Program-made: the position numbers and the translations under genes
Shown here: piece by piece, positions 3,498 through 35,039 of the stretch
Position numbering within the stretch: position 1 is the first letter of the stretch
How the letters are laid out: every line of letters starts with the position of its first letter
Notes under the pieces: model-generated
Seen by the model: only the letters and a program-made list of their open reading frames with translations
The model's database searches: none
Told to the model about the DNA's origin: nothing
NCBI GenBank assembly: GCA_002104945.1
Contig: MCFH01000125.1
Span: forward strand, 1-35,039
DNA from: Piromyces finnis finn
Taxonomy: Eukaryota > Fungi > Neocallimastigomycota
DNA: 35,039 nucleotides
Direction of reading: 5' to 3'

Positions 3498-3529
<32 letters not shown>

Positions 3530-8417: not shown

Positions 8418-8428
8418 AGTGTTTTTAT
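8418..8428 (-). promoter_or_regulatory. Self-priming-type PBS of A (ATAAAAACACT)
   Basis: Directly follows the 5' LTR. Its perfect complement lies at 8605-8615 in the LTR, about 35 nt downstream of a TATAAAA on the minus strand. Confidence 0.85.
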
Positions 8429-8663: not shown

Positions 8664-8694
<31 letters not shown>

Positions 8695-8816
8695 CAATTT
8701 GATAAGTGAATTAATTACTTAATGATTGGTTATAAAAATATAATTATGAAATTTTCATTAATCTAACCTTAATGATTTTCTAGTCTAACCCTTATCATTA
8801 GATATACCTCATTACA
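8429..8816 (-). repeat. Element A 5' LTR (388 bp)
   Basis: Direct repeat of 3263-3651. Confidence 0.97.
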
Positions 8817-9535
8817 ATATATATAAAACAAAAAAAAAAAAAAAAAAAAAAATATGTTATTGAATAAAATATATATTAATAGTGAATAATAATATTTAAT
8901 AACAATTATAATAAAACATATGAAATTATATAAATACATTTACATAAAGTGATTTATATACATCAATCGAGCAATTGAAATATAAAATATACAAATAATA
9001 ATAAATAATATTTTAAATATATAAATTGTTATGTGACTTGATATGATAATTAAATTAAAATTAACAATAAAATAAATTATATTATGCAAGATATATTAAA
9101 GTAATAGAAATATAAAAAATATAAATATATATATATATATATAAATTGAAATTATATAATCATAAATAAAATAGTTAAAACACTAGTAAATAACATATCA
9201 CAAATAATTATATTACTAAACATTGAATAATAATAATAATAAATATAAAAGGATAAATAATAAATAATAAATAATTAATGATTAATAATTAGTAATAATT
9301 AATAATAATTAGTAATAATATTGAAAATACAAATATTTGACGATCATATTCTAAGATAATAATAATAAATTATAATAAAAATTTATCATTTAATAATAGT
9401 ATAGACAATAATTATTATCAATAATATCAACAATAATTAATTAATAAACAAAAATAAGAAATAATAATAATTAATAAAATAGGAAATTATTTAAATATAA
9501 AATATATAAGAAATAACATAATAATAGTACAGAAA

Positions 9536-11322: not shown

Positions 11323-11692
11323 TGTAAAGATATCAAACGCCTCTGTTTGATATCTTTAATGTAACTTAAGCCACAAGTATTATTGTTTAAGTTACACAAA
11401 TTATATTCAGAAAAAGAAAATGAGACATAATTTATTTATTAATAATTAAGATTTTAGTGTAGATTTTAAATAATAATATATAAGAAATAAATAGTTATAA
11501 TATAATATAATGTATTTAGGAAAATATAAATAGAAGATATTTTTCATCATTTTATCGATGTAATTGTTATTATTAAAATTCTATTATAATAAAAGATATT
11601 TTTAATAAAACAATTTTTTATTTTTATTTTAAATTTAGTGTTATTGTAATAGAATAGATATCCTAATCTATTCTTTCTGTGTCGCCATTACA
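11323..11692 (+). repeat. Element B 5' LTR (370 bp)
   Basis: TGTAAAG...CATTACA; repeated at 16714. Confidence 0.93.
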
Positions 11693-11703
11693 ATAACAAT
11701 TAC
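11693..11703 (+). promoter_or_regulatory. Self-priming-type PBS of B (ATAACAATTAC)
   Basis: Perfect complement GTAATTGTTAT at 11560-11570, 30-35 nt after TATAAA (11525-11530). Confidence 0.85.
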
Positions 11704-15100: not shown

Positions 15101-16588
15101 TTACTATTTCGTTTCATCATAGCGATAACAAACCGTTAATCGATTCTATTTTATTAGAACTTAAAAATGACGATTTGTATAATTCTATTGTCCAATTTAA
15201 AATGAATGGTTCTGCATGTAATGCACCTATTAAAAATATTGATAAAGTTATTATTGATAGTGAAGGATTTTTGTTATATAATAATCTTATTTATGTTCCT
15301 AAATCTCTTAGGACAGAGTTTTGGAACTTCATCATGATTCTGTTGCTGCTGGTCATTTCGGTATTAAGAAAACCTGAACTGATTTCCAGAAACTTTTGGT
15401 GGCCAAGGTTTCATTCAGACGTTAAATCTTTTATCAAATCTTGCGTGACTTGTTGCAAATCCAAAGTCCCCAGACATAAGCCTTATGGATTGTTATCCCC
15501 TTTGGACACTCCCAGTAGGCCCTGGTCTGATATTTCTATTGATTTTATTGTTGATCTTCCTAAGTCCAGAGATATGACAACTCTCATGGTTGTTGTCGAT
15601 AGATTTACTAAATTTGCTCACGCCATTCCTTTACGTTGTCTTCCTACTGCTTCGATTGCTGCTGATGCTTTTATTGCTAATGTCTTCCGTTTGCATGGTC
15701 TTCCTGATTCCATCATTTCTGATAGAGGCTCGCAATTTACTTCTGACTTTTGGTCAAGACTTTGTGACCTTCTTAATATCAATCATTCATTATCAACTGC
15801 CAACCATCCGCAGACAGATGGTCAAACGGAGAGGGTGAACGGCATATTAGAACAATATTTCCGTTGTTTTATAAATAAAAAGCAGAATAACTGGGTTGAT
15901 CTTATCCCATTTGCTGAATTTGCATATAATAAACTTTACAACAATCTATAAATCAATCCCATTCTTTGCTAATTATGGTTTTCATCCAAAGTTCAGCTTA
16001 GAAATTCCAGCTAATGATAGACCTAGTAGAGCTGAACAAAGAGTAATTGATATGAATGAAAACTTTAAATTATTAAAAGAAAACTTAGAAAAAGCAAAAG
16101 AAACATATAAGAAATATGCCGATATGAAAGAATGATTCCCCCGGATTGAAGTGGGAAAGAAGGTATGGTTATTGAAAGATTCTCCTGGAACTAACCTAAA
16201 GAGAAAATTAGCACCTCAAATGCTTGGCCATTTGAGATAATTGAAAAAGTTAGTTCTCTCGCTTTCAAATTGAAACTTCCAAAGACAATGAGATGTCATC
16301 CAGTCTTTCATGTTTCATTGTTAGAACCATACTTTGAAAACAAGTTTAACGACAGGTCTAATCGTAGGAAGAGGAAATATTCACCTTAACACAGATTTAA
16401 TTGAAAAAATTCCAGAGAAAATTGAAAAGATGAAATCTGTTAATGGTGAAACATTTTATAAGTTATCATGGAAAGGATTTGACAAATCCACTTGGATTTC
16501 TGAAGATCAGATTCCAGATAAACAATTAATACAAGAGTTTGAAAGAAACTCTAAAAAGTCAAAAATAAGTCGAACGACTCCTCCATGA
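12163..16588 (+). CDS. gag-pol: Element B gag-pol, multiply frameshifted, with an atypical chromodomain
   Basis: Gag [14 protein letters not shown], knuckle [14 protein letters not shown], protease LIDSGS, RT YIDD, RNase H ETDAS, integrase IDF..D..GQTE, and C-terminal [14 protein letters not shown]. Confidence 0.92.
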
Positions 16589-16713
16589 AAATTAGAAAGA
16601 ATAAAGTTGGTAATCTAATCAAGCACAGATACCAACCATTTGTAATTGAAATTCCTTCGAGAAAAGATTCCTTATAAATTAATCTCGCAGGAGCTCGACT
16701 TAGAGAGAGAGAT

Positions 16714-17308
16714 TGTAAAGATATCAAACGCCTCTGTTTGATATCTTTAATGTAACTTAAGCCACAATATTATTGTTTAAGTTACACAAATTATATTCAG
16801 AAAAAGAAAATGAGACATAATTTATTTATTAATAATTAAAGTTTAAAACAAAATAAATTATTAATTTATTTTTAATGTTTAACAAGTAAATTAATATTCT
16901 CAATTTAAATCCCTAGTTTTAGTATTGTTTTTTTATAGAAATAGATAAATAAATAAATGATTAATATATCAATAATACATGGGCACATATTCAAATTAAA
17001 GTACTTAATTTGAATTGCCAATTGTATTTTACTAAAAATAGTTATAGTTTAAATATTTATTAATAATTAAGATTTTAGTGTAGATTTTAAATAATAATAT
17101 ATAAGAAATAAATAGTTATAATATAATATAAATGTATTTAGGAAAAATATAAATAGAAGATATTTTTCATCATTTTATCGATGTAATTGTTATTAATATA
17201 ATTTCTATTATAATAAAAGATATTTTTTAACAAAACAATTTTATATAAATCTTTAGTGTATTGTAATAGAATAGATATCCTAATCTATTCTTTTGTGTCG
17301 ACTTTACA
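16714..17308 (+). repeat. Element B 3' LTR carrying an internal insertion
   Basis: Matches the 5' LTR once 16840-17070 is removed. The R-U5 half differs from the 5' LTR at several sites. Confidence 0.9.
16840..17053. other. 214-bp AT-rich insertion flanked by a 17-bp direct repeat
   Basis: TATTTATTAATAATTAA at 16823-16839 and 17054-17070. The 5' LTR has one copy and no insert. Confidence 0.85.
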
Positions 17309-18056
17309 AAAATATTATATATAAATTTTTAAATATGAAATTACATATTTTAAATAATAAAAATTATTTTAAATATGGCTGATATGTAGCTAGACATATT
17401 ATTTCATATCAGAAAATAAAATAAATAAAAAACAACTTTCTCTACAACACATTGATACAAGATACATAAAAAAATATAATATTTTAAATATTTTATGAAT
17501 AATATGTTAAGGATTTGAGATGAATTTAGGTAAGTTAGGTCAGAATGCCCTAACCCTACTTATTAAATTAATATAAATTATGTTTTATAATCAAACTTTT
17601 ATTTATTAATAAATTTATTAATACATTTTGTTAATCAAATATTTTATTAATCACTAAGTAGAGTTAAAAAACTTAATGATTTCTCGAAAAATTCAATTGT
17701 TGAATTAATTTTGAGTATTTATAATTTTTAAATCAATTAATTAATAATTATTCTATTTAATATAGTTACATTAATTATAAAATACATGATTCCAATTTTA
17801 ATATAATTAACTATTCTATAAATTAAAATATATTAAATATTTATATAATGACTTTAAGCTTATGACTTATCTTTATTACTTGCTTAAGTCATTTCAATCA
17901 TTTGAGGAGGAATGACTAATTATTTCATTTATTTAAATTTCCTTCCACATCAAATGAATAAAGAGATATTATTTAAACTTTAATAAATATAAAATCTTAA
18001 TAATTATAATTAATAAATATCTCTAAAAATATTATTAAATAATGTTTTTCTAAAAT

Positions 18057-18585
18057 TGTAATGTTTCTATAAAAATAATATATTTATATAGAAACGTTTC
18101 TGTACACAATAGGCGAGTATATCCACTTAAGTAATATGTTTTTTTAATATATTAATAAAAATATTTTATTTATTTTATTTTTTAAGTTTCTTTATTTAAT
18201 TTATAAAATAATATTTTATAATTTTGTGTAAATTACTTATTTTTTTATTATTAATTAATAAAAACACAAAAAATAATTTTTTTTGTAAATTTTCTTTCCT
18301 TTTATACTTTTCCAAAATTAATTAAAATTTAGGTTTCGGAAAGATAATAGTATTAATTAGTAATTAAATTTTAATTTCCGATATTTGATTGGTCTCGGCT
18401 AATTTCAATAAAATTTAAAATAAATTTATCGGAATATCTATTTAAAAAATTTTTAAAATCAATAAATAAAATTATTATTTTAAATTTGGTAAAGTTATGT
18501 GTCGAACCCACGACATCTATCGTGATTAATTTCGACATTTACCAATATACCAATATTACTAATTTCATTATCAATATTCGTTACA
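18057..18585 (-). repeat. Element C 3' LTR (529 bp)
   Basis: TGTAATG...CGTTACA on the + strand; repeated at 23031. Confidence 0.96.
18499..18552 (-). promoter_or_regulatory. tRNA-type A-box/B-box in U3 of the C LTR (second copy at 23472-23525)
   Basis: A-box-like TGGTATATTGG (18552-18542, 1 mismatch) and perfect GTTCRANNC match GTTCGACAC (18507-18499); spacing 45 nt. Confidence 0.6.
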
Positions 18586-18684
18586 TGGTCCTCCTCGAAT
18601 GATTCGGATACCAGACGAATCTTTAAAACTTTACAAAAAATTATAACAAGTTACATACAAAATTACAAATTACATTAAACTAGA

Positions 18685-21600
18685 CTAATAGGGTTCCAAA
18701 TCAGATACGTGAATGATTGGGTAGATTCTAAGTTCATCAGGAAGTTCAAGTTTATAGGATATCGGCGAAACTTTCTTTAAGATTTTAAAAGGTCCAAGTT
18801 TCCTTGGTTTAAGCTTCTTATTTCCATTTCTTATAATTAGATTACTATTTATCCATACTTTATCGCCTACTTTGAGCTCCGGTGGATTTTTTCTATTATT
18901 ATCATAGTATTTCTTTTGTTTGTTAATAGCTTCTTTTAAATTTTCTTTAAGTTGTTTTGTTAGTTCATCAAAGTCCTTAATGAATTCTTCAGCTCTAGGC
19001 ACATCTGAATGACTTGGGATGTGGGGAGAATGCTTAGGGTTATAGCCATAGTTGGCAAAAAATGGTGAGTATCTCAAAGATTCTTGAATTGAATTGTTAT
19101 AGCTAAATTCGGCAAGATGAAGATATTTGTACCAGTTGGATCCTTTGAGGTTGGAGTAGCACCTTAAGTATTGTTCAACAACGGAGTTCACCCTCTCCGT
19201 TAATCCATTAGTTTGATGGTGAAAAGGAGAAGAGAGTTTAAGATCAATGTTGAATGATTTACAAATTGCGTTCCAAAATTTAGAGGTGAATTGAGTCCCT
19301 CTGTCAGAAATTATTTCTTCGGGTAATCCATGGAGTCGAAAAATGTTGGACATGAAGGCAGAAGCTGTATCAAGAGCAGAGGGGACTTTAGGAAAAGGAA
19401 CAAAATGACTCATCTTAGTGAGTCTGTCAACAACAACGAAGATACAAGAAAATCCATTTGATGGAGGAAGATCGGTGACAAAATCCATCGAGATAGAGGA
19501 CCATAGTTTATTTGCTATCTCTAATGGTTGAAGAAACCCATAAGGTTTATAAGGTTTATGTCTTGAATCCTTTGAGCGGCAACAAATTTCGCAAGAGCGA
19601 ACGTATTCTTTAACGTCCGGGATTAAAGAAGACCACCAGAAATCACGATTTACGAGGGCGATTGTTTTTTTAATACCAAAATGTCCGGCAGAAGGCGAAT
19701 CATGGCAAATATTTAAGATAGTAGGACGGCAATTCTTTGGGACATAAACTTTATTGTTGAATAATAAAAAACTGTTACTTAGGGAGAACTTATCAATACT
19801 TGGGTGTGGGACCGGAGGATTCTTCGATTCGAGGTAATAGCAAATATTTTGATAAAATTTGTCATTTTTTAATTCGGATAAGATGTTTTCGTAAAGAGAA
19901 TAAATAACTGAAGCGGGAGCACAAAAGTTTTCAGGGCGAAGAACAGAAAGAGGGATTGAATTAGGTTCCATATTATCAGGAGCAGAAGCATAATCAGGTC
20001 TGCGAGATAATGCATCAGGTTTTCCATTATTGGAGCCGGAGCGATACCTGATGTTGAAATTAAACTCGGCTAGAAAAAGGGACCAACGAACATGCCTTTG
20101 GGTCATCTTCTCGGGCTTCTTTTGATATAATAGGTTTCTGTGATCAGAGAAGATTGTGAATGAAATGGAGGTTCCTTTTAGGAGATGACGCCAGTGTTCT
20201 AACGAGTCAACGATTGCTAGTAACTCTTTATCGTAAATTGGATAATTTTTTTCCGCAGCAGTGAGTGACCTAGAAAAGAAAGCTATAGGATGAACCTTGT
20301 TGTCTGAAAGGGAATTTTGCGAGAGAATGGCTCCAATGGCGAAGTTACTGCTATCAGTTTCTACCAAGAATGGAAGTTTCCTGTTAGGATAAGCTAAAAT
20401 GGGGGCAGAAGAGAACGTTTTCTTAATGTCTTCAAAGGCTTCTTGCGATTCTTTAGTCCATTCAAACTTAATACCCTTCTTGAGGAAAAGGGTTAATGGC
20501 TGAGAACGCTTTGCGAAGTTGGGAATAAAGCGTCGATAATAGTTAACTAAGCCTAAAAATGATTGAAGTTCTTTAGTATTGGAAGGAACGGGCCATTCAA
20601 GAATTGAGGATACTTTGGAAGGATCCATATATATCCCATTGTGAGCAATTCGATGTCCAAGGAAGTCGAGAAATGGGACAAAAAATTGGCACTTTTCAAT
20701 TTTTGCATATAGGCCAGCTTTCCTTAGCCTAGTAAGAACTTCATCAACGTGTTTGAGATGCATAATCTCATTTTCTGAGAAGATTAAAATGTCGTAGATA
20801 TAACTAAAGGCAAATTCACCGAGTATACCATCCAAAACGTCATTAATGAAGTGCTGAAAAACCGCGGGTGCGTTTTTCAGACCAAAGGGCATTACCAAGT
20901 ATTCGAAATGACCAAACTTACAGTTGAAAGCGGTTTTATATTCATCACCGCTCTTGATCCTAACCAAATTATATGCTGAACGTAAATCCAATTTTGAGAA
21001 TATATTTCCTTTTCCTAGCTGTTCTAGCATTTCATTAATAAGTGGTAGCGGATACGAATCACGGATTGTGATCTCATTTAGGCGTCTATAATCGACACAC
21101 ATACGTAGGTCGCCATTCTTCTTAGGCACAAATAGTACTGGAGCCCCAGCTGGTGACTTCGACTTTCTAATAAATCCCTTTGATAAATTATCATCAATAT
21201 ATTCTTTAAGTGCGGTCGATTCCTTTTCTGTTAATGGATAAATTGGTCCATAAAATAATTGAGATCCTGGTTTGAGATTGATCTCACAGTCATATTGACG
21301 GTGTGGAGGAAGGGTATTTGCTGATTTTTCGTCGAATACATCCTTAAAAGATCTAAGCTTAGAGGGTAACATTTCCATTATTTTCTCTTCTGAATTTAAT
21401 TCATTAGGAGATTCGGATTCAATGATATGAGTTGTGAAAGAGCTAGGTATAACTATACAATGTGAAAGGCAATAGTTAGATTTGAATGATATTTCTTTAT
21501 TGGCGAAGTCAATTGTCGGGTTGTGGGTACTAAGCCAATTTATTCCAAGGATTCCACAGTAAGAAGGTAGATCCAAAACATAAAATTCAGTTTGACATTG

Positions 21601-22656
21601 ATGATTCTTATATTTTAAGGAAATAGGAAGAGTTTTACTTAAAATAGGTTGCATTCCTCCAATTCCAGAAATTCTTGGGGGGATGGAACTGGAATCAAAT
21701 GGAATGTTGTTTTCCTTAGCAAAATAAACATCCATTAAGTTCAATTCAGAACCAGAATCTAAGAGAAGCTTGACAGTGGTAGAAGTTCCGGCGAAGGCTA
21801 GTTCGGTGGTTAGAATCGGTTGTCTTATATTTTGATTATCTGATAATCTTGGTCGAGCAGGTAATTTTGTATTTGAATGGGAAACAAAAGCTGAGCTTGA
21901 GGGTGCTTTATTCTTCTTATTAGCTAATGGGCAATCTTCTAGTTTATGTTGAGCGGATCCACAATATAAACAAAGATTTTCTTTTCTTCTACGTTCCTTT
22001 TCTTCTTTTGTGAGTGGACCTCGGTGTTTAATAAAAGGTTTAGATTGTTTCGTATTATTAGATGATGAGCTTTTACTAGAAGAATTTTTTCCATTACCAA
22101 ACAATTGTCTATGAGCGGATATTCTTGAGTCAATTCTAGTAGCGATAGTCTGCATTGAAGATAGTGTTTTCGGTCCAGGGAACATTTCAAGAATTCTACT
22201 AGCTATTGGGTCTTGAAGGCCTTCCAGAAAAGCATCCATCTTTGCATCCTCATTCCATGTAGATTCGTCCGCATACTTATTAAATTCTAGGATATAATTT
22301 TGTATATTACCTAGACGTCTTTGTTTTATTGTCCTGAGTTTCCTATTGGATACGAAAGCTGAATCAGAAGAACCGTACATTGCTTTTAGCTTTCCAACAA
22401 AGGCTTCGTAGTCATATAAACATGGGTCATTGTTTTTTATCAGAGAAACAATCCAATTCATTGCATCCCCGTACATTCTAGATATCAAATATACGACTTT
22501 ATCTGTATCACTGACATAACGGTCTGGATAGAGCATAAATATAAGTTCCATCTTAGCAATGAATCCTTTGAAAAATCGACGGTCTCCTGCAAAACCATCT
22601 TTCAAAGTTGCATTATCTAAGTTACTATTATTCGTATTTAAGAATTCGTGTTCCAT
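18685..22656 (-). CDS. gag-pol: Element C Gag-Pol polyprotein, 1323 aa, no chromodomain, RT motif YIYD
   Basis: Single ORF with knuckle CLYCGSAQHKLEDC, LLDSGS, RT, ETDSS RNase H and HHCC/DDE integrase. It ends IHVSDLEPY*. Confidence 0.97.
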   Translation of the reverse strand: MEHEFLNTNNSNLDNATLKDGFAGDRRFFKGFIAKMELIFMLYPDRYVSDTDKVVYLISRMYGDAMNWIVSLIKNNDPCLYDYEAFVGKLKAMYGSSDSAFVSNRKLRTIKQRRLGNIQNYILEFNKYADESTWNEDAKMDAFLEGLQDPIASRILEMFPGPKTLSSMQTIATRIDSRISAHRQLFGNGKNSSSKSSSSNNTKQSKPFIKHRGPLTKEEKERRRKENLCLYCGSAQHKLEDCPLANKKNKAPSSSAFVSHSNTKLPARPRLSDNQNIRQPILTTELAFAGTSTTVKLLLDSGSELNLMDVYFAKENNIPFDSSSIPPRISGIGGMQPILSKTLPISLKYKNHQCQTEFYVLDLPSYCGILGINWLSTHNPTIDFANKEISFKSNYCLSHCIVIPSSFTTHIIESESPNELNSEEKIMEMLPSKLRSFKDVFDEKSANTLPPHRQYDCEINLKPGSQLFYGPIYPLTEKESTALKEYIDDNLSKGFIRKSKSPAGAPVLFVPKKNGDLRMCVDYRRLNEITIRDSYPLPLINEMLEQLGKGNIFSKLDLRSAYNLVRIKSGDEYKTAFNCKFGHFEYLVMPFGLKNAPAVFQHFINDVLDGILGEFAFSYIYDILIFSENEIMHLKHVDEVLTRLRKAGLYAKIEKCQFFVPFLDFLGHRIAHNGIYMDPSKVSSILEWPVPSNTKELQSFLGLVNYYRRFIPNFAKRSQPLTLFLKKGIKFEWTKESQEAFEDIKKTFSSAPILAYPNRKLPFLVETDSSNFAIGAILSQNSLSDNKVHPIAFFSRSLTAAEKNYPIYDKELLAIVDSLEHWRHLLKGTSISFTIFSDHRNLLYQKKPEKMTQRHVRWSLFLAEFNFNIRYRSGSNNGKPDALSRRPDYASAPDNMEPNSIPLSVLRPENFCAPASVIYSLYENILSELKNDKFYQNICYYLESKNPPVPHPSIDKFSLSNSFLLFNNKVYVPKNCRPTILNICHDSPSAGHFGIKKTIALVNRDFWWSSLIPDVKEYVRSCEICCRSKDSRHKPYKPYGFLQPLEIANKLWSSISMDFVTDLPPSNGFSCIFVVVDRLTKMSHFVPFPKVPSALDTASAFMSNIFRLHGLPEEIISDRGTQFTSKFWNAICKSFNIDLKLSSPFHHQTNGLTERVNSVVEQYLRCYSNLKGSNWYKYLHLAEFSYNNSIQESLRYSPFFANYGYNPKHSPHIPSHSDVPRAEEFIKDFDELTKQLKENLKEAINKQKKYYDNNRKNPPELKVGDKVWINSNLIIRNGNKKLKPRKLGPFKILKKVSPISYKLELPDELRIYPIIHVSDLEPY

Positions 22657-22732
22657 AATTATTTTTTTTTAGGAAATATGCAAGAGAAGAAGAAATCGGA
22701 AATTAGAGAAGCTTAAGGGAGTCCAAAGTCCA

Positions 22733-22810
22733 AAAGAGAGTCCTAAAGAGAGTTCTAAAGAGAGTTCTAAAATGAGTCTAAAAAAAAATCCTAAAGATAG
22801 TCCAAAAGAT
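22733..22810. repeat. Degenerate ~12-bp tandem repeat in the C 5' UTR
   Basis: AAAGAGAGTCCT / AAAGAGAGTTCT / AAAGAGAGTTCT / AAAATGAGTCT... units. Confidence 0.7.
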
Positions 22811-23020
22811 AACAGATTCGAAGAGTTGAGTATTTTTCAAAAGAGTTTGATGGTAGGGAGAATTCAGAATATCTTAATAGATTTCAAAAAAAAATTTAAT
22901 ATAATCCCAGTAGGTTTCAGTATAGTTTACTGTAGTTCAAAAGATTTCGAAGGAGTTTATCAGCAATAAGTAAATTTTAATATGCTTTGATATACAAGGG
23001 TATTGTGTATATTTCTTAGG

Positions 23021-23030
23021 GTGTTTTTAT
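23021..23030 (-). promoter_or_regulatory. Self-priming-type PBS of C (ATAAAAACAC)
   Basis: Abuts the 5' LTR. Its complement lies at 23231-23240, about 35 nt downstream of TATAAAA on the minus strand (23273-23279). Confidence 0.8.
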
Positions 23031-23544
23031 TGTAATGTTTCTATAAAAATAATATATTTATATAGAAACGTTTCTGTACACAATAGGCGAGTATATCCAC
23101 TTAAGTAATATGTTTTTTTAATATATTAATAAAAATATTTTATTTTATTTTATTTTTAAGTTTCTTTATTTAATTTATAAAATAATATTTTATAATTTTG
23201 TGTAAATTACTTATTTTTTATTATTAATTAATAAAAACACAAAAAATAATTTTTTTTGTAAATTTTCTTTCCTTTTATACTTTTCCAAAATTAATTAAAA
23301 TTTAGGTTTCGGAAAGATAATAGTATTAATTAGTAATTAAATTTTAATTTCCGATATTTGATTGGTCTCGGCTAATTTCAATAAAATTTAAAATAAATTT
23401 ATCGGAATATCTATTTAAAAAATTTTTAAAATCAATAAATAAAATTATTATTTTAAATTTGGTAAAGTTATGTGTCGAACCCACGACATCTATCGTGATT
23501 AATTTCGACGTTTACCAATATACCAATATTACTAATTTCATTAT
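23031..23544 (-). repeat. Element C 5' LTR, truncated by insertion of D
   Basis: Matches 18057-18571, then switches abruptly to the TGTAAG of LTR D. Confidence 0.95.
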
Positions 23545-24039
23545 TGTAAGAAATATTTGTGGCCATAAGTTTGCCCACAAATATTTCAATTGAAACCATA
23601 TATTCTGGTCATCATTTATTGGCCAAATATATGTATAACCATATATTAATGGTTATTAATTAAATAGGAAGTTTATTTGCTTTACCCAATCAAGTGGTAA
23701 AGAAAATAAACTCATATAGTTAAATAGTATAGTCAAAACTAACGTTAAATACTTTAGCGTTAGTATTAAAGTAAATTAGTAACTATAATAATAATTAATG
23801 TAGATAATTATAATTAATAAATAAAAGATATAATTAAAATATAATTATTTAAGTAAAAGTTATTTCATAAAATATTTATATAAGTGTTTATATTTATTTT
23901 AGTGTTATAATATTTATTTTCTTTCTTTTATTATTTTTTATAAAACTTTATTTAGTTATTAACTCGTATAGAGAGGTAATAACTAACTTAATTAACTAAT
24001 TAGTAACTTATTAACTAATAATATAAAAAACCTTTTACA
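23545..24039 (+). repeat. Element D 5' LTR (495 bp)
   Basis: Near-identical to the solo LTR at 2092-2586. Confidence 0.95.
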
Positions 24040-24050
24040 ATACTAACGCT
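24040..24050 (+). promoter_or_regulatory. Self-priming-type PBS of D (ATACTAACGCT)
   Basis: Perfect complement AGCGTTAGTAT at 23756-23766 (also at 2303-2313 in the solo LTR). Confidence 0.9.
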
Positions 24051-24339
24051 TTATAGTTAGTTCTTACGTTAGCTTAGTTTTAATTAGGTTAGTTTTATTA
24101 AAGTTCTTAAAAAACATATTTTATTTTATTTAAATTATTGTTTAATAATAATCATTTACAATATTTTATATAATATTCAAATATTATATTTAAAAGAAGT
24201 AAATTTATTATTAAAAATAATTATTTTTTAATAGTTTAGTAATAAAAAGTTCATTATTTTAAAATTTAAAATTCACTATAATCATATTTTATATAATAAA
24301 TTCTTTAATTTATTGAAAGAATTTATTTTAGAGTTAGAA

Positions 24340-26490
24340 ATGAAAAATACAGGTAAGTCGCCTAACCCTCGAGGTGTCCATAAATTGGACACAAAAACAT
24401 CATTCGTAAGGGACGGGACCCGTCCTGACGCGGCGAGCGCGGATGGCATGGATGGTGTAGAGGGAATGTCACGGGTTCGAACCCCGGTGCTTCTCGAAAG
24501 CACTGAGGTCGAATCTAATCAGAATTTACAGGTTCAACAGGGGGATTCTATGCCCGCCCCTGTTGATCCTTCTTTCTTTTTTACTAATAATAGTGAGGTA
24601 AACCCAATGCAGCACATTGAAGTTCTTCTTAATAGATATGTTTCGGAAATATCTAGCCAGTTTGCTAGTATGGGAAACCGTCTGGGTGCTATGGAAGAAC
24701 AACTTCGGGGTATTGAGGTTTACAAGAGCGAGATAAACGATGCTCTTCAGCAAAAATTTGTTGAAGTGGATCAAAGGTTGGAAGCAAATGAGTCAGCTAG
24801 CCAAGTTAGCTTGGAAGAGCTGCATGCTGTGGAAAATGCCTTTACTGCAGAACATGAGGAAAGGTTACAAGACCACCAGCAAGTGCTAAACAACCAAGAA
24901 ACGTTGTACCGCCAATCTAGTGCCTTTGTCTCTTATAAAAAAGAGCTTGAAGAAGAGATGGCCAGATTGAGGGAACAACGAAACGCTCTAGAAGAAAGAG
25001 AAAAATTGTTCGAGGCTAAAGTCGAAGCCATGAACAGAAGAGCTGAAGCCAGAGCTCATGAAAGAACATCCTATCAAACCGGTGGTATGGGTAATCCTCA
25101 TGGTGCTGGAACTAGTAGTAGCACCAACCCTACGGAATACTCCGAGGATGGGGACGTGAAGATGTTCGACTGGCGAGTACATAGGTATGAAGAAAAAGTG
25201 CCTATGTTTGATAATAATGGGATAGACTTAGAGGGTTTTCAAGAGAAATGCTTACGTCATTTCAAACGTTACCCATATGACTATGGTAACGACGAAAAGG
25301 CAAAGGTTAGCTTCATTGAAGATCATCTAGGTGGGAAAGTATTGAGATGGTATAGACTCAGAGAGAGGATGTTGCAGCGTAGGAATCCTGATGCTGAAAG
25401 ACTATTCCTCCACCTTCAAGATAAGTTTCCACCAGAGTCTCCCCATGAACTCTGCAAGTCAAAGTTGCTTAAGCTCACACATGAGTGGGGAAAAGCATAC
25501 GATTACTTGGAAGAGTTCAATGAATTGACGGAAACACTTGGGCTCCCTGAAAATGTTAGGAGACAGGTGTTAATACAACAGGTCAGGCCTTCTGTCAGGG
25601 AAGCGTTCTATGATATCCCTGAACAGGAACGTACGCTGGAAACATTAAGTGAAGTCTTGTTAAAGTGCGATGATCACCAAGCAGTCTTCCGTAATGAAAC
25701 CATAGAAAAGTACGACAAAAGAGACCGCCAGACCACTATTATGGCCTTGTTGGACATTACAGACCCATGTAGACCATCTAGATGGGCTGAGTTGAAGCAG
25801 AAGAACAACAAGCCAAATAATAAGCCTAAAGTTGAGCAGACCAACACTCAGGCTTACGCAAAAAACAATAACGGTACTAAAGAACGTCGTGAATCCTTAA
25901 ATAAGTCAAGCTTTAGAAGAAGTTCTAGCTTCCAACCAAGGCAAGGACCTTCTAGTATGGGAAATAACCCATTACCTAAGGCTATGGCAAGTCAAACGAC
26001 GGTCAATAACAGTTACTACAGTCAGAACCAACTAGTAGCTGAAATAAATGCAAGAAGCAACCCTCGAGATATAAAAAGGGTGGAAGTCTTGTATGATACT
26101 GGTTCCACTACAAACCTCATTCACCCAAATTTGGCAAAGAAGCTCGGGTTAAAAGTAGTGGACAAACCAGCCATATTCAGAACTGTGAATGGAGATATCG
26201 AGTTAAAGCAGTTCTCAGATGACTTGCAGTTGAAGTTATGGTTAACTCCATCTGGCGAACAAGAAGCTAAACCATACTGCTTCAACACAAGTTGTCACCT
26301 ATCCGACAACATGCCGGAGATGATCATTGTGGGACTGGGCTTCATGGATGAGCACTTTATCTACAGAGGTTATGATAAAGATGCACAAGTGAGGTACTTC
26401 GTAGTAGATAATGATAAAGATAAAGGACATACCAACGGTTATGGTGTAAATGGTGGCGATATCTACTACTGTACTCAATTAAGTCCATAA
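24340..26490 (+). CDS. gag: Element D Gag-protease with a long Glu/Gln-rich N-terminal extension and no CCHC knuckle
   Basis: The 725-aa ORF track starts at TTG 24313; first ATG is at 24340. Contains the capsid-like segment VPMFDNNGIDLEGF...KVSFIEDHL and protease VLYDTGS. Confidence 0.85.
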   Translation: MKNTGKSPNPRGVHKLDTKTSFVRDGTRPDAASADGMDGVEGMSRVRTPVLLESTEVESNQNLQVQQGDSMPAPVDPSFFFTNNSEVNPMQHIEVLLNRYVSEISSQFASMGNRLGAMEEQLRGIEVYKSEINDALQQKFVEVDQRLEANESASQVSLEELHAVENAFTAEHEERLQDHQQVLNNQETLYRQSSAFVSYKKELEEEMARLREQRNALEEREKLFEAKVEAMNRRAEARAHERTSYQTGGMGNPHGAGTSSSTNPTEYSEDGDVKMFDWRVHRYEEKVPMFDNNGIDLEGFQEKCLRHFKRYPYDYGNDEKAKVSFIEDHLGGKVLRWYRLRERMLQRRNPDAERLFLHLQDKFPPESPHELCKSKLLKLTHEWGKAYDYLEEFNELTETLGLPENVRRQVLIQQVRPSVREAFYDIPEQERTLETLSEVLLKCDDHQAVFRNETIEKYDKRDRQTTIMALLDITDPCRPSRWAELKQKNNKPNNKPKVEQTNTQAYAKNNNGTKERRESLNKSSFRRSSSFQPRQGPSSMGNNPLPKAMASQTTVNNSYYSQNQLVAEINARSNPRDIKRVEVLYDTGSTTNLIHPNLAKKLGLKVVDKPAIFRTVNGDIELKQFSDDLQLKLWLTPSGEQEAKPYCFNTSCHLSDNMPEMIIVGLGFMDEHFIYRGYDKDAQVRYFVVDNDKDKGHTNGYGVNGGDIYYCTQLSP

Positions 26491-29341
26491 CTACAGTTAC
26501 TAATGCAAAAGCAAGAAGGCCTCTGGTAACTGTAACTGCGGAAAACATAGAAGCCGAAATCGTGGGTAATGGTAGCCACAAGGCTACAAAGGAAACCAGA
26601 AACGGAAGTTCCGGAGGGTTGGCATCGAGTTCCAACTTAGAGAAAAATCCCGTTTCAGTAGGGTTGGTACAGAGTGTTGACTTAGAGAAAAAATGTGATT
26701 CCGGAGGGTTGACATTTGAATCCAACTTAGAGAAAACTTGTGTTTCAGTAGGGTTGGTACAAGAGTCGAACTTAGAGAAAAATCACATTTACGTAGGGTT
26801 GGTACAGGAAGAAAACTTAAACGAAAATCAACCCACACCTGAAGAAATCGTGGAGAAGTACTACCACAATTTCAAAGAAGCATTTAATGAAGAGATAGCT
26901 AACCAGCTACCAGAACACCGTCCTTACGACTGTAAGATCGATCTGGAGCCGGATGCTAGTCTCCATAAAGGGCCTATATATCCCTTCAATCCAGAAGAGG
27001 AAAAAGCATTGAAGGAATATATAGAGGAAAACCTGGCAAAGGGCTTCATCAGGAAGTCAGAGAGTCCTGCAGGTTATCCTGTGTTATTCGTGCCCAAAAA
27101 GAGTGGTGAAAGACGATTATGTACTGATTATAGGCGTCTTAATAAGGTAACAGTGCGTAACTCCTTCCCCTTACCACTCATCAGTCAAGTGTTCGAGGCT
27201 ATGAAAGGCGCGACTATCTTCTCCAAGTTGGATTTGAAGTCTGCCTACAACCTCGTGCGTATTCGTGAAGGTGACGAATACAAGACGGCATTCTCAACCA
27301 AGTTTGGGCATTATGAATATCTAGTGATGCCATTTGGGTTGACTAATGCTCCTGCCACGTTCCAAGGGTTCATTAATACGGTGCTGGCAGAAGAAATCAA
27401 TGACTGCTGTCAAGTGTACTTGGATGATATCATCATCTACTCCAAGTCACTTGAAGAGCATGTAGGGCATGTAAAAAGAGTCCTACAAAAGCTAATAGAT
27501 AATCGTCTAGTAGCTAAATTAGCGAAGTGTGAGTTCCACAAGGAAGAACTTGCATTCCTGGGTCATGTAGTTGGAAAATATGGTATTAAAACCGACCCAG
27601 AGAAGTTAAAAGCTGTAGCAAGTTGGCCACAACCAACCAATATCAAAGAACTACAGTCATTCCTCGGATTCTGCAACTATTATAGGAAGTTTATAAAGGA
27701 CTTCTCTAAGATAGCAAGGCCGTTATATGCTATGACGTCCAAAAAGGTACAGTTCCTGTGGAATGAAGAACGCATCCAGGCGTTCGAGAAGTTAAAAGAA
27801 ATGCTGTTGTCTCCACCAGTATTAGCATATCCTGACCATGACCGTCAGTTCATAGTGGAGTGCGACGCTAGTAACTACGCGGTGGGTGGTGTACTATCAC
27901 AACTAGGCAATGACAATGAACTACACCCTGTGTATTACTATTCCAAGAAGCTTACGAAAGCAGAAATCAACTACTCCATCACGGAAAAGGAGTTATTGGC
28001 TATTAGGAATGCTTTCATCGAGTGGCGACACCTGTTGATGGGTGCGAAACATAAGGTCCTAGTATATAGTGACCATAGGAATCTCCTGTTCGCCACAAAA
28101 CCACAGTTGTTGACAGCAAGACAGGCAAGATGGCAAGAGCTGTTTGCTGCCTACAACTTCGAAATAATATATCGGCCAGGGAAAATGAATGGTAGAGCCG
28201 ATATCCTATCAAGAATGGTATCTCCAGAACAGGTACAACTGGAGATGGAAAAAGCTAGCCTCCTTCGACCTGAACAGGTAAAAGAATTTCCACCCGTGGA
28301 AGAAGAGTGCTATGCGGTGTTAGAAGTAAGCTTCGTGGGAGAATTGAAACAAGCTTACAACACGGATGAGCTTGCTAGGGAAATTAGAGATGGTCTTGAC
28401 GCAAAAAGAGGCCACAAGCTCATCAAAAAGAAGTGGTTGATGGTTAATGGGTTGATTGTTAGAAAGGATGCACCAGAACGTACATATGTACCAAAGGTGT
28501 TAAGGGAAACAATCATAAAACTTAACCATGATAGTGAAACAGCGGGTCACTTAGGAAAGGATAAGACTTACGACCTGATAGCCAGAAACTATTACTGGCC
28601 AAAAATGAAGGATGACATTGCGGGTTACATTAAAGCTTGTACCATATGTTGTACCCAAAAGGACAACAGACACAAGCCGTACGGTAGCGCTGCTAGGGTA
28701 AAAGTTGCAGACTTACCTTGGCAAGAAGTAGAAATTGACTTCCTGACGGACCTACCTATTAAGGAACGTAGAAAACCAGGTAGTAGTCCCTCAGAACCCC
28801 CAGAAGTCACTAGAAGAGGTTGTATCATGGTTTGTAGCGATAAGTTAACCAAAATGATACACTTAGTGGGATTTAGGAGTATGCCTACTGCTAGAGAAAC
28901 AGCCTTAGCATACTTACAACATGTATTCAAGTTACATGGTTGTCCCAAATCGGTTACTACGGATCGTGGTGTCCAGTTCACTAGTAAGTTGTGGAAGGAC
29001 ATTATGGGGTTCTTTGGCGTAGAAGTAAACCTTGCTACTACTGGCCATCATGAAACAGTTGGTCAGGTAGAACGTAACAACTCCTACGTAAGTATGTACC
29101 TTAGGTGCTTTGTGAAGACCTTTGATGACGACGAATGGTTGAAGTACTTGTACTTAGCTGAGTTCTGTTATAATAATGCAGTGCACAGTTCTACTAAGCA
29201 GTCCCCATTCCTAGCCTTGTATAACTACCAGGTACATATGAATCCTCAAGATTCAGAACTTGTCCACTCCCTTGGCGAAGCTCCTGTATTAGATAGCTTC
29301 GCTCACAACTTAGGTAACTTAAAGCACATGCTGGACATATC
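26424..29341 (+). CDS. pol: Element D RT-RNaseH-integrase, C-terminus cut by E
   Basis: Frame is open from 26424. Contains YLDD, ECDAS, HDSETAGH..C..C, IDF..TDRG..GQVE. Confidence 0.93.
26610..26834 (+). repeat. 5 x 45-bp coding tandem repeat in the PR-RT spacer of D
   Basis: SGGLASSSNLEKNPV / SVGLVQSVDLEKKCD / SGGLTFESNLEKTCV / SVGLVQESNLEKNHI / YVGLVQEENLNENQP. Confidence 0.88.
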
Positions 29342-29750
29342 TGTAAAGAACTAATGTTCAATAAATAAAAACACAAATATATAAAAAGGAAAATAATAAA
29401 AGCAAATAAAAATTTTATTATTGAACACTTAACAAAATTATAACAGGTTAGTGTTTAATAATTTTATTTTTATTATAAAATTTCTTTGTTAATAAAAACT
29501 CGAATTCCAAATAATTTTTTGAGAAATTTCACTCGTATTTATATAAATGTTTTTAAAAGTAAATTTATAAAAATTTTACAACTTAATTTTTTAAGCCAAT
29601 CAGAAATTATCTTCTTTGGTAAAATTTCGTTATAAAATATTTTAATAATTAAAAAAAAGATATTAATGAGGTTTCGAACTCGAGTAGTTCAAACCAAGGT
29701 CTTAGTTACTAACCACTAAGACAGGTTACTAATTTCTATGATTCGTTACA
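29342..29750 (-). repeat. Element E 3' LTR (409 bp; left edge inferred)
   Basis: TGTAA at 29342 and TTACA at 29750, with the PPT adjacent. The same TGTAA/TTACA ends occur in A-D. No second copy is available in the window. Confidence 0.75.
29651..29723 (-). promoter_or_regulatory. tRNA-type A-box, B-box and oligo-T terminator in U3 of the E LTR
   Basis: TGTCTTAGTGG (29723-29713, 1 mismatch), GTTCGAAAC (29679-29671), spacing 44 nt, and T8 at 29658-29651. Confidence 0.65.
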
Positions 29751-29847
29751 TGGTCCTCCTCCAGGATTCGGATACCAGACGAATCAACTAAATTTATTTG
29801 TTACTTTATTATAAAAGAAATAATTGAAACGAGTGAATACATTTTGA

Positions 29848-29888
<41 letters not shown>

Positions 29889-29991
29889 TGAATATTAAAT
29901 TATAAATATATTTTTTCATTTTCTATTTTCTATTTTCTATTCTCTTTTTCTCTTATCAATTACTAATTTTTTTTTAAATTAATAACTATTA

Positions 29992-32900
29992 CTAATGTGA
30001 ATTATTAAAGTTTTTAATTAGTTCATCGCAGTTTAAATTACTTTCAGGTTCCCAAGATGCTTCTGAAAGCGGATAACCTTTCCATTTTATTAGATATTGA
30101 ATCTTCCCATAATGCTTTCTTTTATCAAGTATTTCTTCTACTTCGTATTCTTCTTCTTCATTTACTATTATAGGTGGAGGTGGATCTTTGATTCTTCCAA
30201 AACTATCTTCATAATACGGTTCTAGGTTTGAAACATGAACAATTGGGTAAATCTTCAGCGATTTTGGTAATTCTAATTTATAAGTGAGATTAGAGATTTT
30301 ACTAATTATCCTAAACGGGCCAAGTTTCCTAGGATTAAATTTTTTATTTCCTTTATGAATTATCAAGGAGCTATCCAACCATACTTTGTCACCAGTCTTG
30401 AATGTCGGAGGTTCTTGTCTATACTTGTCGGCATATTTCTTTTGAACTTGGATGGCCTTCTTTAAGTTTTCTTTTAGTTTCTCCATTAGGTCTTCAAAGT
30501 CTCTTGTAAACTCTTCAGCTCTTGGAACATTCGTTTGGTCAGGAATTACCGGAGAGTATTTTGGGTGATAACCATAATTTAGGAAGAATGGTGAGAATTT
30601 TGTTGAGTCTTGAACAGCATTATTGTAACTGAATTCTGCCAATGGAAGAAAGTTGATCCAGTTTGTTCCTTTATAATTAGAAAAGCATCTTAAATATTGT
30701 TCAACAACGGAGTTTACCCTCTCCGTTTGGCCATTGGATTGATGATGATATGGTGAAGAATATTTAACATTGACGTCCAAAGATTGACAAATAGATTTCC
30801 AAAATTTCGAAGTGAATTGCGCGCCTCTATCGGAAATAATTTCAGAGGGGAGACCGTGAATTTTGAAAATATAATTCAAAAAAGCAAAAGCAGTATCAGA
30901 AGCAGAAGGAATACCTTTAAAGGGAATGAGGTGGCACATTTTAGTAAGGCGGTCAACTACAACAAGAATAGTGTTAAATCCATCCGAAGGAGGGAGGTCA
31001 GTAATGAAATCCATAGAAATAGAAGCCCAAGGATGGTCACTAATCTCAAGGGGTTGAAGTAAACCATATGGTTTATGACGAGAAGGCTTGGAGCGGCAAC
31101 AAATCTCGCAAGATCGGATATAATTCTTAACATCAATAGAAATGGATGGCCACCAAAAGTCACGAGAGATCAAAGAAATAGTTTTGCGGATACCAAAATG
31201 ACCGGCAGAGGGGGAATCATGACAGAGTTTCAAAACGGAGGGACGGCATTTTAAAGGGACATAGATTCTACTATCAAAAAGAAGAAAACTATTACTAAGG
31301 GAGAATTTATTACTTTGTGGATGTGGAGCTGGGAGATTCTTATTTTCAAGAAAATTGCAAATGTCAATGTAAAAAGAGTCGTTCACATATTCAGATAATA
31401 TTTCATCATTAAGAGAAGAAATGGAACAAATCAAAGCGCAGAAATTCTCAGGGCGTAAAACCGAAAAAGGAGCATCAGAAGGAAGAGAGGAATCTATATA
31501 ATCAGGTCTTCGTGAAAGCGCATCAGGTTTACCATTTGATGAACCAGAGCGGTAGAGAATTTTAAAGTTAAATTCGGAAAGGAAAAGGGCCCAACGAACG
31601 AGACGTTGTGACATTTTTTCCGGTTTCTTTTGATATAGTAAGTTTCGATGATCTGAATAAATAGTAAACGGGGTTAAAGCACCTTTGAGAAAATGTCGCC
31701 AAGTCTCAAGAGCATTAACAATAGCTAAAAGTTCTTTATCGTATATAGGATAGTTTCTTTCAGCGGAAGTAAGAGATCTTGAATAGAAAGCGACAGGATG
31801 GATCATTTTATCATCAGGAGATTTTTGAGACAGAACTGCTCCTATAGCAAAGTTGCTAGAGTCGGTTTCAACAATAAAGGGAAGATCACGATTTGGGTGA
31901 GACAGGATGGGAGCAGATGAAATTAATGATTTAATGGTATTAAATGCATCAAGAGCTTCAGAGGAAAAATCAAATTTAACGTTTTTACGAAGTAGTCTGT
32001 GAAGGGGTTGTGCAACTTTGGCAAAATTAGGAATAAACCGACGATAGTAGTTGGCTAGGCCAATAAAAGATTGAACTTCCTTGACACTGGACGGAACTGG
32101 CCAATTAATAATAGCAGAAACTTTATTGGGTCCATATGTATACCTTCAGAGGATATCCGATGACCAAGGAAATCAATAGAGGAAACAAAGAATTCACACT
32201 TTTCAAGCTTAGCATAAAGACCAGCATTTCTTAAGCGATCCAGGACTTCGATAACGTGCTTAATGTGGGATTTATGGTTTTCAGAAAAAATAATTAAATC
32301 GTCAATATATGAATAAACAAAAATCCCTAGAATATTTTCCAGAACATCATTGATAAAATGCTGAAAAACAGCCGGGGCGTTTTTCAGTCCGAATGGCATT
32401 ACCAGGTATTCAAAGTGGCCGAATTTGCAGGTGAAAGCTGTTTTATATTCATCACCCTTTTTGATTCGGACCAAATTATATGCTGATCGTAAATCCAATT
32501 TTGAGAAGATTTTCGCTTTACCAAGATGCTCTAGCATATCTTGAATCAGAGGTAGAGGATAGGAATCTCTAATGGTAATTTTGTTGAGTTCCCTATAATC
32601 TTGACAAAGACGGAGTTCACCATTCTTTTTAGGAACGAAAAGTACAGGCGCACCAGCAGGAGATTTGGATTTCCTAATGAAACCCTTTTTGAGGTTTTCA
32701 TCGATATAATCCTTCAAAACTCTTGTTTCTTCGTCTGTTAGTGGGTAGATTGGTCCATAAAATAGCTTGGCATTTTCGATTAGGTTTATTTGGCAATCAT
32801 AAGGACGATGAGGTGGTAATTGATCAGCAGAAGATTCGCTAAAGACGTCCATATATGATTCTAATTCCTTCGGAAGTTTAGTAGTAGGATTTGAGTCTTT

Positions 32901-34345
32901 AAAAGAGTTTTTTGGTGAACAAGAATCAACTTTAGAAAGAGATATATTAGAAGCCATGACAGTACAAGTCTCTTGTGATAAAGGATCGTTAACAGATTCA
33001 TTTGTTAATTAAGACAGATTTAGAACGATTTTCTTTGGGATTACGAGAATGAATAACTTAGAATTTGAAAAAGAAGATTTAGGTTGTCAATAAAAATAGG
33101 CAAAGAACGGAAGAAGAGTTATTGCAATCAGTAGAAAAAACAGAAGTTTCCTGATGGAATTCGGGAACATTCGAAGGAGAGTCATACAATGATCCAAGCA
33201 ATTGAAGAACCAAAGGATAATTTATTATTTTCAAAGTCAATACTTGGATTATGTTCCTTAAGCCAACGTAGACCTAGAATACAAGGATTACAGGTAGATC
33301 AGTAACGTAAAAGACAGTACGGCATAGGTGATCCATGTAGCGAAGATTAAGAAGTGGGTAACTCCGAACAGTTTTTGCTACCACCAATACCGAATACGTT
33401 GGGTAAATCTTCTTCATAGTGGTAGGGAATATTGTGATCGTTGCAATAGTCGACATCTATTAGATTAAGTGTAGAACCGGAGTCTATAAGAATTTTTGTG
33501 TCTAGTTCAAACGATAATTTAAAATTTGAGGTTACCCTATCTTGTTGATTTTTCTTGGAATTGGTAGATTTATTTTGTAGAGAAACTAAAGATTCGAATG
33601 CTGAGTTTTTTATTTCTTCTCTTATGACAATCTTTCAGTTGGTGTCCTGGAGATCCACAATAGACACATAAGTTTTCCTTACTTCTTCTTTCTTTTTCTT
33701 CCTTGGATAACGGACCAAAGTATCTTTTCTTCTTGGGATGTTCTTTTAGATTTGTGGAAGCCTTTTGGAGCCATTGCTGGAATTAGAACTTGGTCCCTTA
33801 GTATTTTTGTCAAAAATAATCCCCTGGTAGCAAGTCTGGAGTCTATTCTAGCTGCCAATAGTTTGGAGGGAAAACAAATCTCTTGTCCTGGGAACATCTC
33901 TAATATCTTCATTGCAACTTCTTGGTTGAGCCCAGCGATAAAGATCCATCTTAGCTTTCATTCCAGTTAGATTCATCAGAGTATTTGTTTAAATTCAAGG
34001 ATGTATCCTCTGATGCCGCCCAAACGATGTTGCTTGAGAGTACGTAGCATTTTGATTGGCTACGTAGACTGCATCATTGTTCCCGTAGAATGCCTTTAGT
34101 CTTTCCTTTGAATGCTTGGTAGTTGGTCAGACAATGGATCATGGTTGTCAATAAGGTAGCGGCCCAATTTAATGCATTTCCTAAAGGCGAGAAATCAGGT
34201 AGATAACCTTGCTCTCTTCATCTTGATATCTTTCGGGATAAAGGAGAAAAACAAGTTCTATTTTAGCTAAGAAACCTTTGAGATATTTTCTGTCTCCTGC
34301 GAAACCGTCTTTTAGTGAGGCGTTATCAAATATTTGTCCTTCCAT
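29992..34345 (-). CDS. gag-pol: Element E gag-pol, multiply frameshifted, with a canonical chromodomain
   Basis: ATG at 34345 (MEGQIFDNASLKDGFAGD), ILIDSGS near 33485, RT YIDD, integrase, and [25 protein letters not shown]. Confidence 0.93.
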
Positions 34346-34950
34346 TAAATTAAAAAAATTAATTGTTTGAAAATAAAATATGTAAATAAGATAAAGTTTA
34401 TGTTTGAAGAAATTAAGAAGAAAAAAAATTAAATCTTTATTATTATTTATTGATTAAAATATTTTAAATATAGACAAAGAGTCAAATTAAATAGTATTGG
34501 ACCATCAAATATTTAATTTTATTAGTATTCAATACTAGGTCCTTGTAGCTCTTTGTTGATAACGTAGATATTATCAATTGTTAATATTGGAAATGAAAAT
34601 TTTCAATAAAAGGAATTAACGGTATTAGTTTCTTTATTGTCACTTACTTAATTAAGCGGGAAAGAAAAAAAATAGGTTTAATTCCCCGATTATTAATAAT
34701 ATCTAAACAACAAAGTATTACGTATAGGTGTCCAACTATCCACGCTAAGGGAGTATTGAATCCTAACTTCTTTGTTATTTTAATATTTTTTCAAAAATAA
34801 TAAATAAAATTTAATTTTATTTATTAAAAGTAGAAAACGTTTTATTAGAAAATGAATTTTTTCTTTATTATTAAATTAAGCGTCCTGGCGCTCCCCTTAT
34901 AATAACTGTGGGTTTTACTTTTGTTTTCAGTACCTTATTGTTAAAATAAG

Positions 34951-35024
34951 CTTCACTGACTTACTTAATTTTTAATAAATTAAACTCTTCACTGACTTAC
35001 TTAATTTTTTAATTAAATTAAAAT
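34951..35024. repeat. ~36-bp tandem duplication, possibly part of the E 5' UTR
   Basis: CTTCACTGACTTACTTAATTTTT occurs twice (34951 and 34987). Confidence 0.75.
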
Positions 35025-35039
35025 TCTTCCTTTTTTAAA

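Follow-up and report, generated by a model that had tools for sequence, protein, structure and literature searches.

Pol III promoters inside LTRs are known from the TRIMp3 elements, which comprise Cassandra (5S-derived) as well as Helenus and Ajax (tRNA- and 5S-derived) (PMC10886601). Helenus TRIMs, found in fungi, animals and a plant, carry a tRNA-like Pol III promoter in the LTR; they are 311-1263 bp long, non-coding and non-autonomous, and are thought to be transcribed wholly by Pol III, and the autonomous partners of Helenus and other TRIMp3 elements must, according to the argument put forward there, use Pol II promoters (PMC10886601). Pol III transcription of Cassandra is stated to have been validated (PMC10886601); for the cassette described below such transcription would be a prediction.

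Pol III genes also serve as integration targets. According to two reports (10.1101/2021.07.27.453949 and PMC6101501), Ty3 insertions are confined to a narrow stretch at the start sites of Pol III genes, where TFIIIC bound to the A and B boxes sets TFIIIB at about 20 bp upstream of the A box.

In the Piromyces finnis contig analysed here, a tRNA-like pair of A and B boxes (the cassette) stands at the very start of U3 in autonomous Ty3/gypsy elements, and members of a tRNA-gene-targeting retrotransposon family, D, are inserted in front of it. The cassette is probably a decayed, tRNA-derived type-2 Pol III promoter, on which TFIIIC and TFIIIB would assemble and be read by D. To our knowledge, LTR-borne Pol III promoters have so far been known just from miniature non-coding LTR elements (Cassandra, Helenus and Ajax). 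The first-pass annotation of this DNA had been aware of no description of such promoters in fungal Ty3/Gypsy LTRs; this has to be narrowed, since tRNA-like Pol III promoters are known in the LTRs of the non-autonomous Helenus TRIMs (PMC10886601), and the new point is the presence of an LTR Pol III-type module in autonomous elements.

Like Helenus, the carriers of the cassette have tRNA-derived A and B boxes inside the LTR that do not make up a functional tRNA, occur in fungi and are flanked by target-site duplications (TSDs) of 5 bp (PMC10886601). They differ from it in being autonomous gag-pol elements of 5.5-6 kb with a separate TATA promoter and self-priming, and in their affiliation: in fungi, Helenus goes together with Copia elements, those of rusts and of some agarics, whereas the carriers are Tf1-type Ty3/gypsy elements. 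Being neither miniature (about 0.3-1.3 kb) nor non-autonomous, they are not Helenus. With Cassandra of plants they share an internal Pol III promoter that is located in the LTR and was taken from a small RNA gene, but the promoter of Cassandra is of type 1 (5S) and the element is non-autonomous. There is also a likeness to Tf1/Tf2 of Schizosaccharomyces pombe, as seen in the Tf2-type SH3 domain of the carriers, the chromodomain of E and a primer-binding site (PBS) complementary to LTR sequence after the TATA box; we know of no report of Pol III boxes in Tf1 LTRs.

Structure of the contig

The window, i.e. the whole stretch of DNA analysed, is an entire 35,039-bp contig of a 56-Mb assembly (GC content 31.5%), and contains a stack of LTR retrotransposons beside a single tRNA gene. 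The latter is a real tRNA-iMet gene (2009-2080, minus strand), recognised by ARAGORN and Rfam, and served as the reference for box spacing and D targeting. A D-family solo LTR (2092-2586, plus strand), flanked by the TSD ATTTT (2087-2091 and 2587-2591), is located, together with its duplication, 6 nt upstream of this gene. Tandem repeats at 385-1220 form a 9-nt-phased array that fills an ORF near the contig start. Elements A (LTRs at 3259-3652 and 8426-8817) and B (LTRs at about 11323-11693 and 16714-17309) carry no cassette in the window, and the B-box core GTTCGACAC at 11965 is not accompanied by an A box.

The cassettes of the window belong to elements C and E, both on the minus strand. Element C has a 3' LTR of 531 bp (18055-18585), an intact gag-pol ORF of 1323 aa (18685-22656) encoding capsid, protease, RT, RNase H, integrase and an SH3 domain, and a 5' LTR (23029-23544) without its first 14 nt, the place of which is taken by D. 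Element D, a Ty3-like element on the plus strand (23545-29341), begins with a 495-bp 5' LTR (23545-24039), the U3 end of which abuts position 15 of the C LTR; its internal part (24040-29341) contains two ORFs (24313-26490 and 26562-29354) and is cut at 29341 by the insertion of E. Element E extends from 29342 to the contig end; it consists of a 409-bp 3' LTR (29342-29750) and a coding part whose pol C-terminal ORF (29992-31806) encodes RNase H, integrase, SH3 and a chromodomain.

The region 18055-35039 is a three-level nest, with D inside the 5' LTR of C (position 15) and E inside the 3' end of D pol (29341/29342), and the 3' LTR of D and the first 14 nt of the C 5' LTR must lie past the contig end. 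The same C-D junction is present on contig C6 (about 14641-20627), representing either a duplication or a second haplotype. A 45-nt tandem repeat in 4-5 copies was also observed between the two ORFs of D (26609-26827).

Boxes and spacing of the cassette

The E LTR starts with TGTAACGAAT at 29750 and ends with TTCTTTACA at 29342, and the cassette occupies its positions 28-100. On the minus strand, the A-box-like TGTCTTAGTGG (29713-29723) is found at LTR positions 28-38, the B-box core GTTCGAAAC (29671-29679) begins 44 nt further on, counted start to start, and a T8 run that may act as a Pol III terminator follows at 29658-29651; all of these had been placed correctly in the first-pass annotation. 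Both C LTRs (minus strand) have TGGTATATTGG starting at 18552 and 23525 (18542-18552 and 23515-23525) and GTTCGACAC starting at 18507 and 23480 (18499-18507 and 23472-23480), with a spacing of 45 nt in each, again as given in that annotation; the other C-family loci (C154 and C13) lie outside the sequence analysed. The tRNA-iMet gene, with TAGCGCAGTGG at 2073 and GATCGAAAC at 2029, has the 44-nt spacing that had been noted for it. The E and C LTRs, described earlier as poorly alignable, gave no mutual BLAST match at 1e-5.

The boxes are of the type-2 form. The A box is TGTCTTAGTGG in the families E, F1 and F2, TGGTCTAGTGG and TGGTATAGTGG in two relatives (L134 and L132, respectively) and TGGTATATTGG in C, each with one or two mismatches to the consensus TRGCNNAGTGG, and the B boxes GAGTTCGAAACC, GGGTTCGACTC and GGGATCGACTC are close to GGTTCGANNCC. 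The A-to-B spacing is 44-45 nt in eight LTR lineages, as in the iMet gene of the window. The cassettes are not tRNAs, as had been recognised: no acceptor stem can be drawn, ARAGORN and Rfam (gathering score) call only iMet in the window, and Rfam at E<=1 gave no tRNA match on loci with F1, F2 and G cassettes.

The T8 run is present in E and F1, but F2 and C have just T4, G has no T run nearby, and the run is not conserved across the families. In one public run a variant of the T8 stretch is 3 nt shorter. Four public runs, out of six that matched, were inspected over 28800-31000; they consist of contigs of uncertain type, among which no segment was limited to the cassette and no starts or ends could be used, and they are uninformative as to a short RNA. 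The genome contains 78 copies of the E cassette stretch, of which 73 are identical, and 96 F2 cassettes.

Integration of D in front of tRNA genes and cassettes

Family D was sampled as 30 genomic LTR copies found by BLAST, each with its flanks and taken regardless of target. In this sample 11-13 nt separate the end of the D LTR from the start of the tRNA-iMet, Trp, Arg and Ser genes that it precedes. Clean 5-bp duplications are found at tRNA genes (ATTTT, AATTA, AATAA, AAATT), and two insertions have the opposite orientation. D is a tRNA-gene-targeting Ty3-like family. It resembles Ty3 of Saccharomyces cerevisiae and DGLT-A/TRE of Dictyostelium in using a window of a few nt upstream of tRNA genes and in its 5-bp TSD, but the targets of those elements are host Pol III genes, whereas D also targets mimics on another retrotransposon clade. 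No report of a mimic serving as the landing site of a tRNA-targeting family was found in the literature searched.

Six of the sampled D copies, representing five insertions, abut E-like LTRs, always in front of the cassette, and no copy in the sample lies elsewhere in an E-like element. One is a full-length D (L036/L037) with the TSD ATCAT within TGTAACGAATCATAGAAAT, hosted by an LTR of family F1. Two others (L038/L039 and L045/L046) share the TSD AATAC within TGCAATGAATACTAGAAAT of an F2 LTR and are different genomic copies, as their outer flanks differ. In the window, 19 nt lie between the A box of C and the end of the D LTR, made up of a presumed 5-nt duplication (ATAAT) and 14 nt. Among the sampled D insertions with an identifiable target, about a quarter to a third are at promoter mimics.

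Genome-wide pattern counts gave 20 D LTR ends located 17-22 nt upstream of a cassette A box, 18 of them upstream of TGTCTTAGTGG and two upstream of a C-type box, namely the one in the window and the one on contig C6, which duplicates the region. No D end in opposite orientation was found at a cassette in these counts, and the reversed-pattern controls recovered no D ends. The junctions are of at least 12 distinct kinds and involve host LTRs of families E, F1, F2 and C; seven have the same sequence and might go back to a common origin, but their flanks, where readable, are different. From the TSD to the A box there are 13-15 nt in tRNA genes and 12-17 nt in cassettes. A D end is carried by about 14% of the 96 F2 cassettes and by two of the 78 cassettes of E, which is the younger family. 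The corresponding pattern for other LTR families ending before a cassette recovered only D and intact LTR starts.

The sole sequence common to the D target sites is the pair of internal boxes, 13-60 nt away from the insertion. Since the targets are alike in these boxes alone, the geometry is that of factor-mediated choice, as in Ty3, and most simply D would be reading Pol III factors that have assembled on the cassette. As D lands at the matching spot before real tRNA genes and before the cassette, the cell very probably treats the cassette as a Pol III gene. It may be envisaged that TFIIIC, once bound to both boxes, brings TFIIIB to a site some 20 nt upstream of the A box, at approximately LTR positions 8-19, and that D reads this complex as it would that of a tRNA gene and integrates there. 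If the cassette is so recognised, each E, F or C copy adds two Pol III-type factor sites that are landing pads for tRNA-targeting elements, and the nest of E in D in C in the window may be the outcome of such landing. The insertion record of a tRNA-targeting family thus offers a natural, though indirect, in vivo read-out of module recognition.

Several further observations concern the D family. Its integrase (L037 2019-3416, minus strand; 26562-29354 in the window) consists of zinc, core and Tf2-type SH3 domains followed by about 77 residues without a Pfam match; there is no chromodomain, and this tail is a candidate reader of the Pol III complex. Some D elements lie, in either orientation, upstream of a tRNA-Ser(GCT) and a tRNA-Met(CAT) gene that are 8-9 nt apart on one strand (L041 2011-2175, L052 2008-2173), an arrangement suggestive of dicistronic transcription of the two tRNAs. 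Beside the D copies with unexplained flanks, Rfam and ARAGORN detected no other Pol III gene. A repeat beginning with GATAAATAATGAAATTAATAAATATAAAATT adjoins D ends on two contigs and in both orientations (L050, L055 on C187; L060 on C176); both boxes are missing from it, Rfam gave no match, and it may be another type of D target or a C-like LTR start whose boxes were lost.

The possibility that E itself targets tRNA genes was also considered and rejected: the 3' flanks of 30 sampled copies are diverse, many lying within other transposons, and only two (L007 and L021) have box-like neighbours. In L021 (1950-2060), a tRNA-like stretch, CTGGTTATTAAGG ... GGTTCGACCC with a CCTTA/TAAGG stem, comes right after the E LTR end; it was not called by ARAGORN and may represent either a further mimic or a tRNA gene in decay.

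Conservation, RNA structure and alternative explanations

Relatives of E were chosen by homology to the C-terminus of its pol (65-72% aa identity), regardless of boxes, and their 3' LTR was read from after the polypurine tract; six were informative, L135 being too short. Four of the six (L129, L132, L133 and L134) have the cassette, with the A box at LTR position 27-36 and the B box 44-45 nt further on, whereas it is decayed in L130 and absent in L131. Its decay or absence in such close relatives means that it is dispensable. Two more distant chromoviruses (L136 and L137, 45-50% identity) have no cassette. A pattern scan of metagenomes returned mostly real tRNA genes, and the only cassette-bearing contigs were L064 and L113, which weigh little for conservation because they were picked by their boxes.

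The first-pass annotation had proposed comparing the boxes with neighbouring U3, and in an identity alignment they turned out to be the most conserved blocks of a diverged U3. Across six lineages the mean pairwise identity is 0.97 in the A box, 0.84 in the B box and 0.46-0.53 in the flanks, figures that are somewhat inflated since the pattern that picked out L064 and L113 contained part of the A box and the regular expression that picked out G needed both boxes. Its main proposal, that U3 begins with a tRNA-type promoter module for Pol III, is accordingly supported by the retention of position and spacing, the conservation of the boxes and the D insertions in front of them.

L130 and L131 nearly coincide in their integrase region and in the spacer before the LTR (L130 2542, L131 4079), but their LTR starts are quite different: in that of L131 a GC-rich hairpin precedes a T run and the B box is missing, and that of L130 has the decayed cassette. 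This suggests exchange or replacement of LTR starts.

All versions of the cassette fold into two hairpins, one with the A box and one with the B box (z-scores -1.2 to -3.4). In E, hairpin 1 (29699-29722, minus strand) has an 8-bp stem, GTCTTAGT/ACTAAGAC, with the loop GGTTAGTA, and overlaps the A box; the B-box core lies in the 3' arm of the predicted second hairpin. Hairpin 1 shows compensatory changes, as in GTCTTAGT/ACTAAGAC of E versus GGTATAG/CTATACC of L132: the share of paired cells is 84%, compared with 20-48% in controls with a slid partner, and double changes occur in four of the eight pairs. This covariation among 11 related sequences is suggestive and hints at selection on the transcript or on a single-stranded form as well.

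One alternative starts from these folds. The cassette might be a cis-acting RNA or DNA structure, i.e. a pair of hairpins within U3 at the 3' end of the genomic RNA with a role in, for example, packaging, dimerisation or plus-strand transfer, in which case the resemblance to Pol III boxes would be left over from the past and Pol III factors would have no part in its conservation. The covariation of hairpin 1 and the presence of two hairpins in every version would fit this explanation, and it would account for the conserved 3' arm of hairpin 1, which TFIIIC binding alone does not need. It leaves unexplained, however, the insertions of a tRNA-targeting family in front of the cassette, which in four LTR families are as far from it as they would be from a tRNA gene, and C has lost hairpin 1 and yet retains both boxes, their spacing and the D insertion. 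As a substitute for the Pol III promoter a cis-acting structure is therefore improbable, although the two are compatible.

It is equally improbable that the cassette is the inert fossil of a tRNA gene or tRNA-derived SINE captured once, the D integrase recognising shared DNA sequence or shape without Pol III factors. The insertion of a SINE into an LTR was indeed proposed as an origin by Kojima (PMC10886601), the cassette has been lost in L130 and L131, and no known targeting domain is recognisable in the D integrase. Against this, the boxes and their spacing were kept while the remaining U3 diverged past recognition by BLAST, and the limitation of likeness among D targets to internal boxes 13-60 nt away is a factor-mediated geometry. 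Finally, chance resemblance in AT-rich sequence can practically be dismissed: single B-box cores are indeed frequent, as had been cautioned (nine in the window, both strands), but the paired motif (A-like box, 28-38 nt, G[AT]TCGANNC) occurs four times (iMet, E and the two C LTRs) against 0.035 expected in first-order Markov simulations of the window (7 of 200 contained one motif), at the same LTR position in unrelated-looking LTRs, and with targeted D insertions.

The carrier elements and possible roles of the cassette

The carriers of the putative Pol III promoter are of full length. Element C is 5.5 kb long with a full gag-protease-RT-RNase H-integrase ORF, which terminates with an SH3 domain about 100 nt before the LTR, and LTR pairs are 5.7 kb apart in E and 6.1 kb apart in F2. 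The assignment of the carriers to an autonomous chromovirus lineage applies, in the strict sense, only to E, which has a Tf2-type SH3 domain and a chromodomain (PF00385, residues 554-602, E=3e-17), but C has no chromodomain. The cassette stands at the start of U3 in an autonomous, self-priming, Tf1-like Ty3/gypsy clade including E, F1, F2, G, C and metagenomic relatives.

A TATA box is located 180-250 nt downstream of the cassette (E LTR position 206, C LTR position 279). In C and F2 the PBS finds its complement within the LTR, some 40 nt past this box, and in the C LTR the complement is at position 319. The 10 nt that follow the 5' LTR make up the complementary stretch, ATAAAAACAC in C (window 22990-23045) and ATAAAATCTC in F2 (L038 2000-2470). 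Pairing of the PBS with the element's own LTR implies that C and F2 are self-priming, as is Tf1. An RNA of the cassette was considered as the primer of reverse transcription and rejected, the PBS of C and F2 being complementary to the LTR after the TATA box and not to the cassette. Given a separate TATA promoter and self-priming, the genomic RNA would be produced from the Pol II promoter 180-250 nt further into the LTR, and the cassette would be neither its promoter nor its primer.

TFIIIC-bound B-box sites of yeasts (ETC/COC sites and tDNA barriers) act as boundaries without a stable RNA. By this comparison a similar role is plausible for a box pair standing before the Pol II promoter of an element that lands in heterochromatin, and a TFIIIC-type chromatin barrier in front of the LTR Pol II promoter may be ranked as the first candidate for what the cassette does for its carrier. 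The second, which does not exclude the first, might be a short two-hairpin Pol III RNA of about 85-90 nt in E. Both kinds of role, a TFIIIC boundary and an RNA of 75-100 nt, had been put forward as possibilities in the first-pass annotation.

A more far-reaching version of the Pol III promoter reading is possible but doubtful. In it the cassette would be an active Pol III gene: the conserved two-hairpin RNA of about 85-90 nt would serve the element, TFIIIC/TFIIIB would shield its Pol II promoter against the heterochromatin to which it is guided by the chromodomain, and, as a by-product, the at least about 180 sites would divert tRNA-targeting elements from host tRNA genes and seed nests. One mobile element would then be rewriting the target map of another.

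Even in its narrower form the reading concerns a Pol III-type module next to a Pol II promoter in full-length elements that were recently active, as the 73 identical E cassettes indicate. If it were confirmed, one transposon clade would make integration targets for another, which would help to explain nested stacks like that of this contig; the genome would have at least about 180 additional TFIIIC/TFIIIB sites (78 E and 96 F2 cassettes were counted); and the idea that elements landing in heterochromatin bring their own barrier would become directly testable.

Another feature of E is a run of about 35 A (element sense) at 29839-29892, between the stop of pol and the polypurine tract. In two public runs the contig depth is above 300 inside E and below 50 past this run, a fall that could reflect internal priming or early transcript ends.
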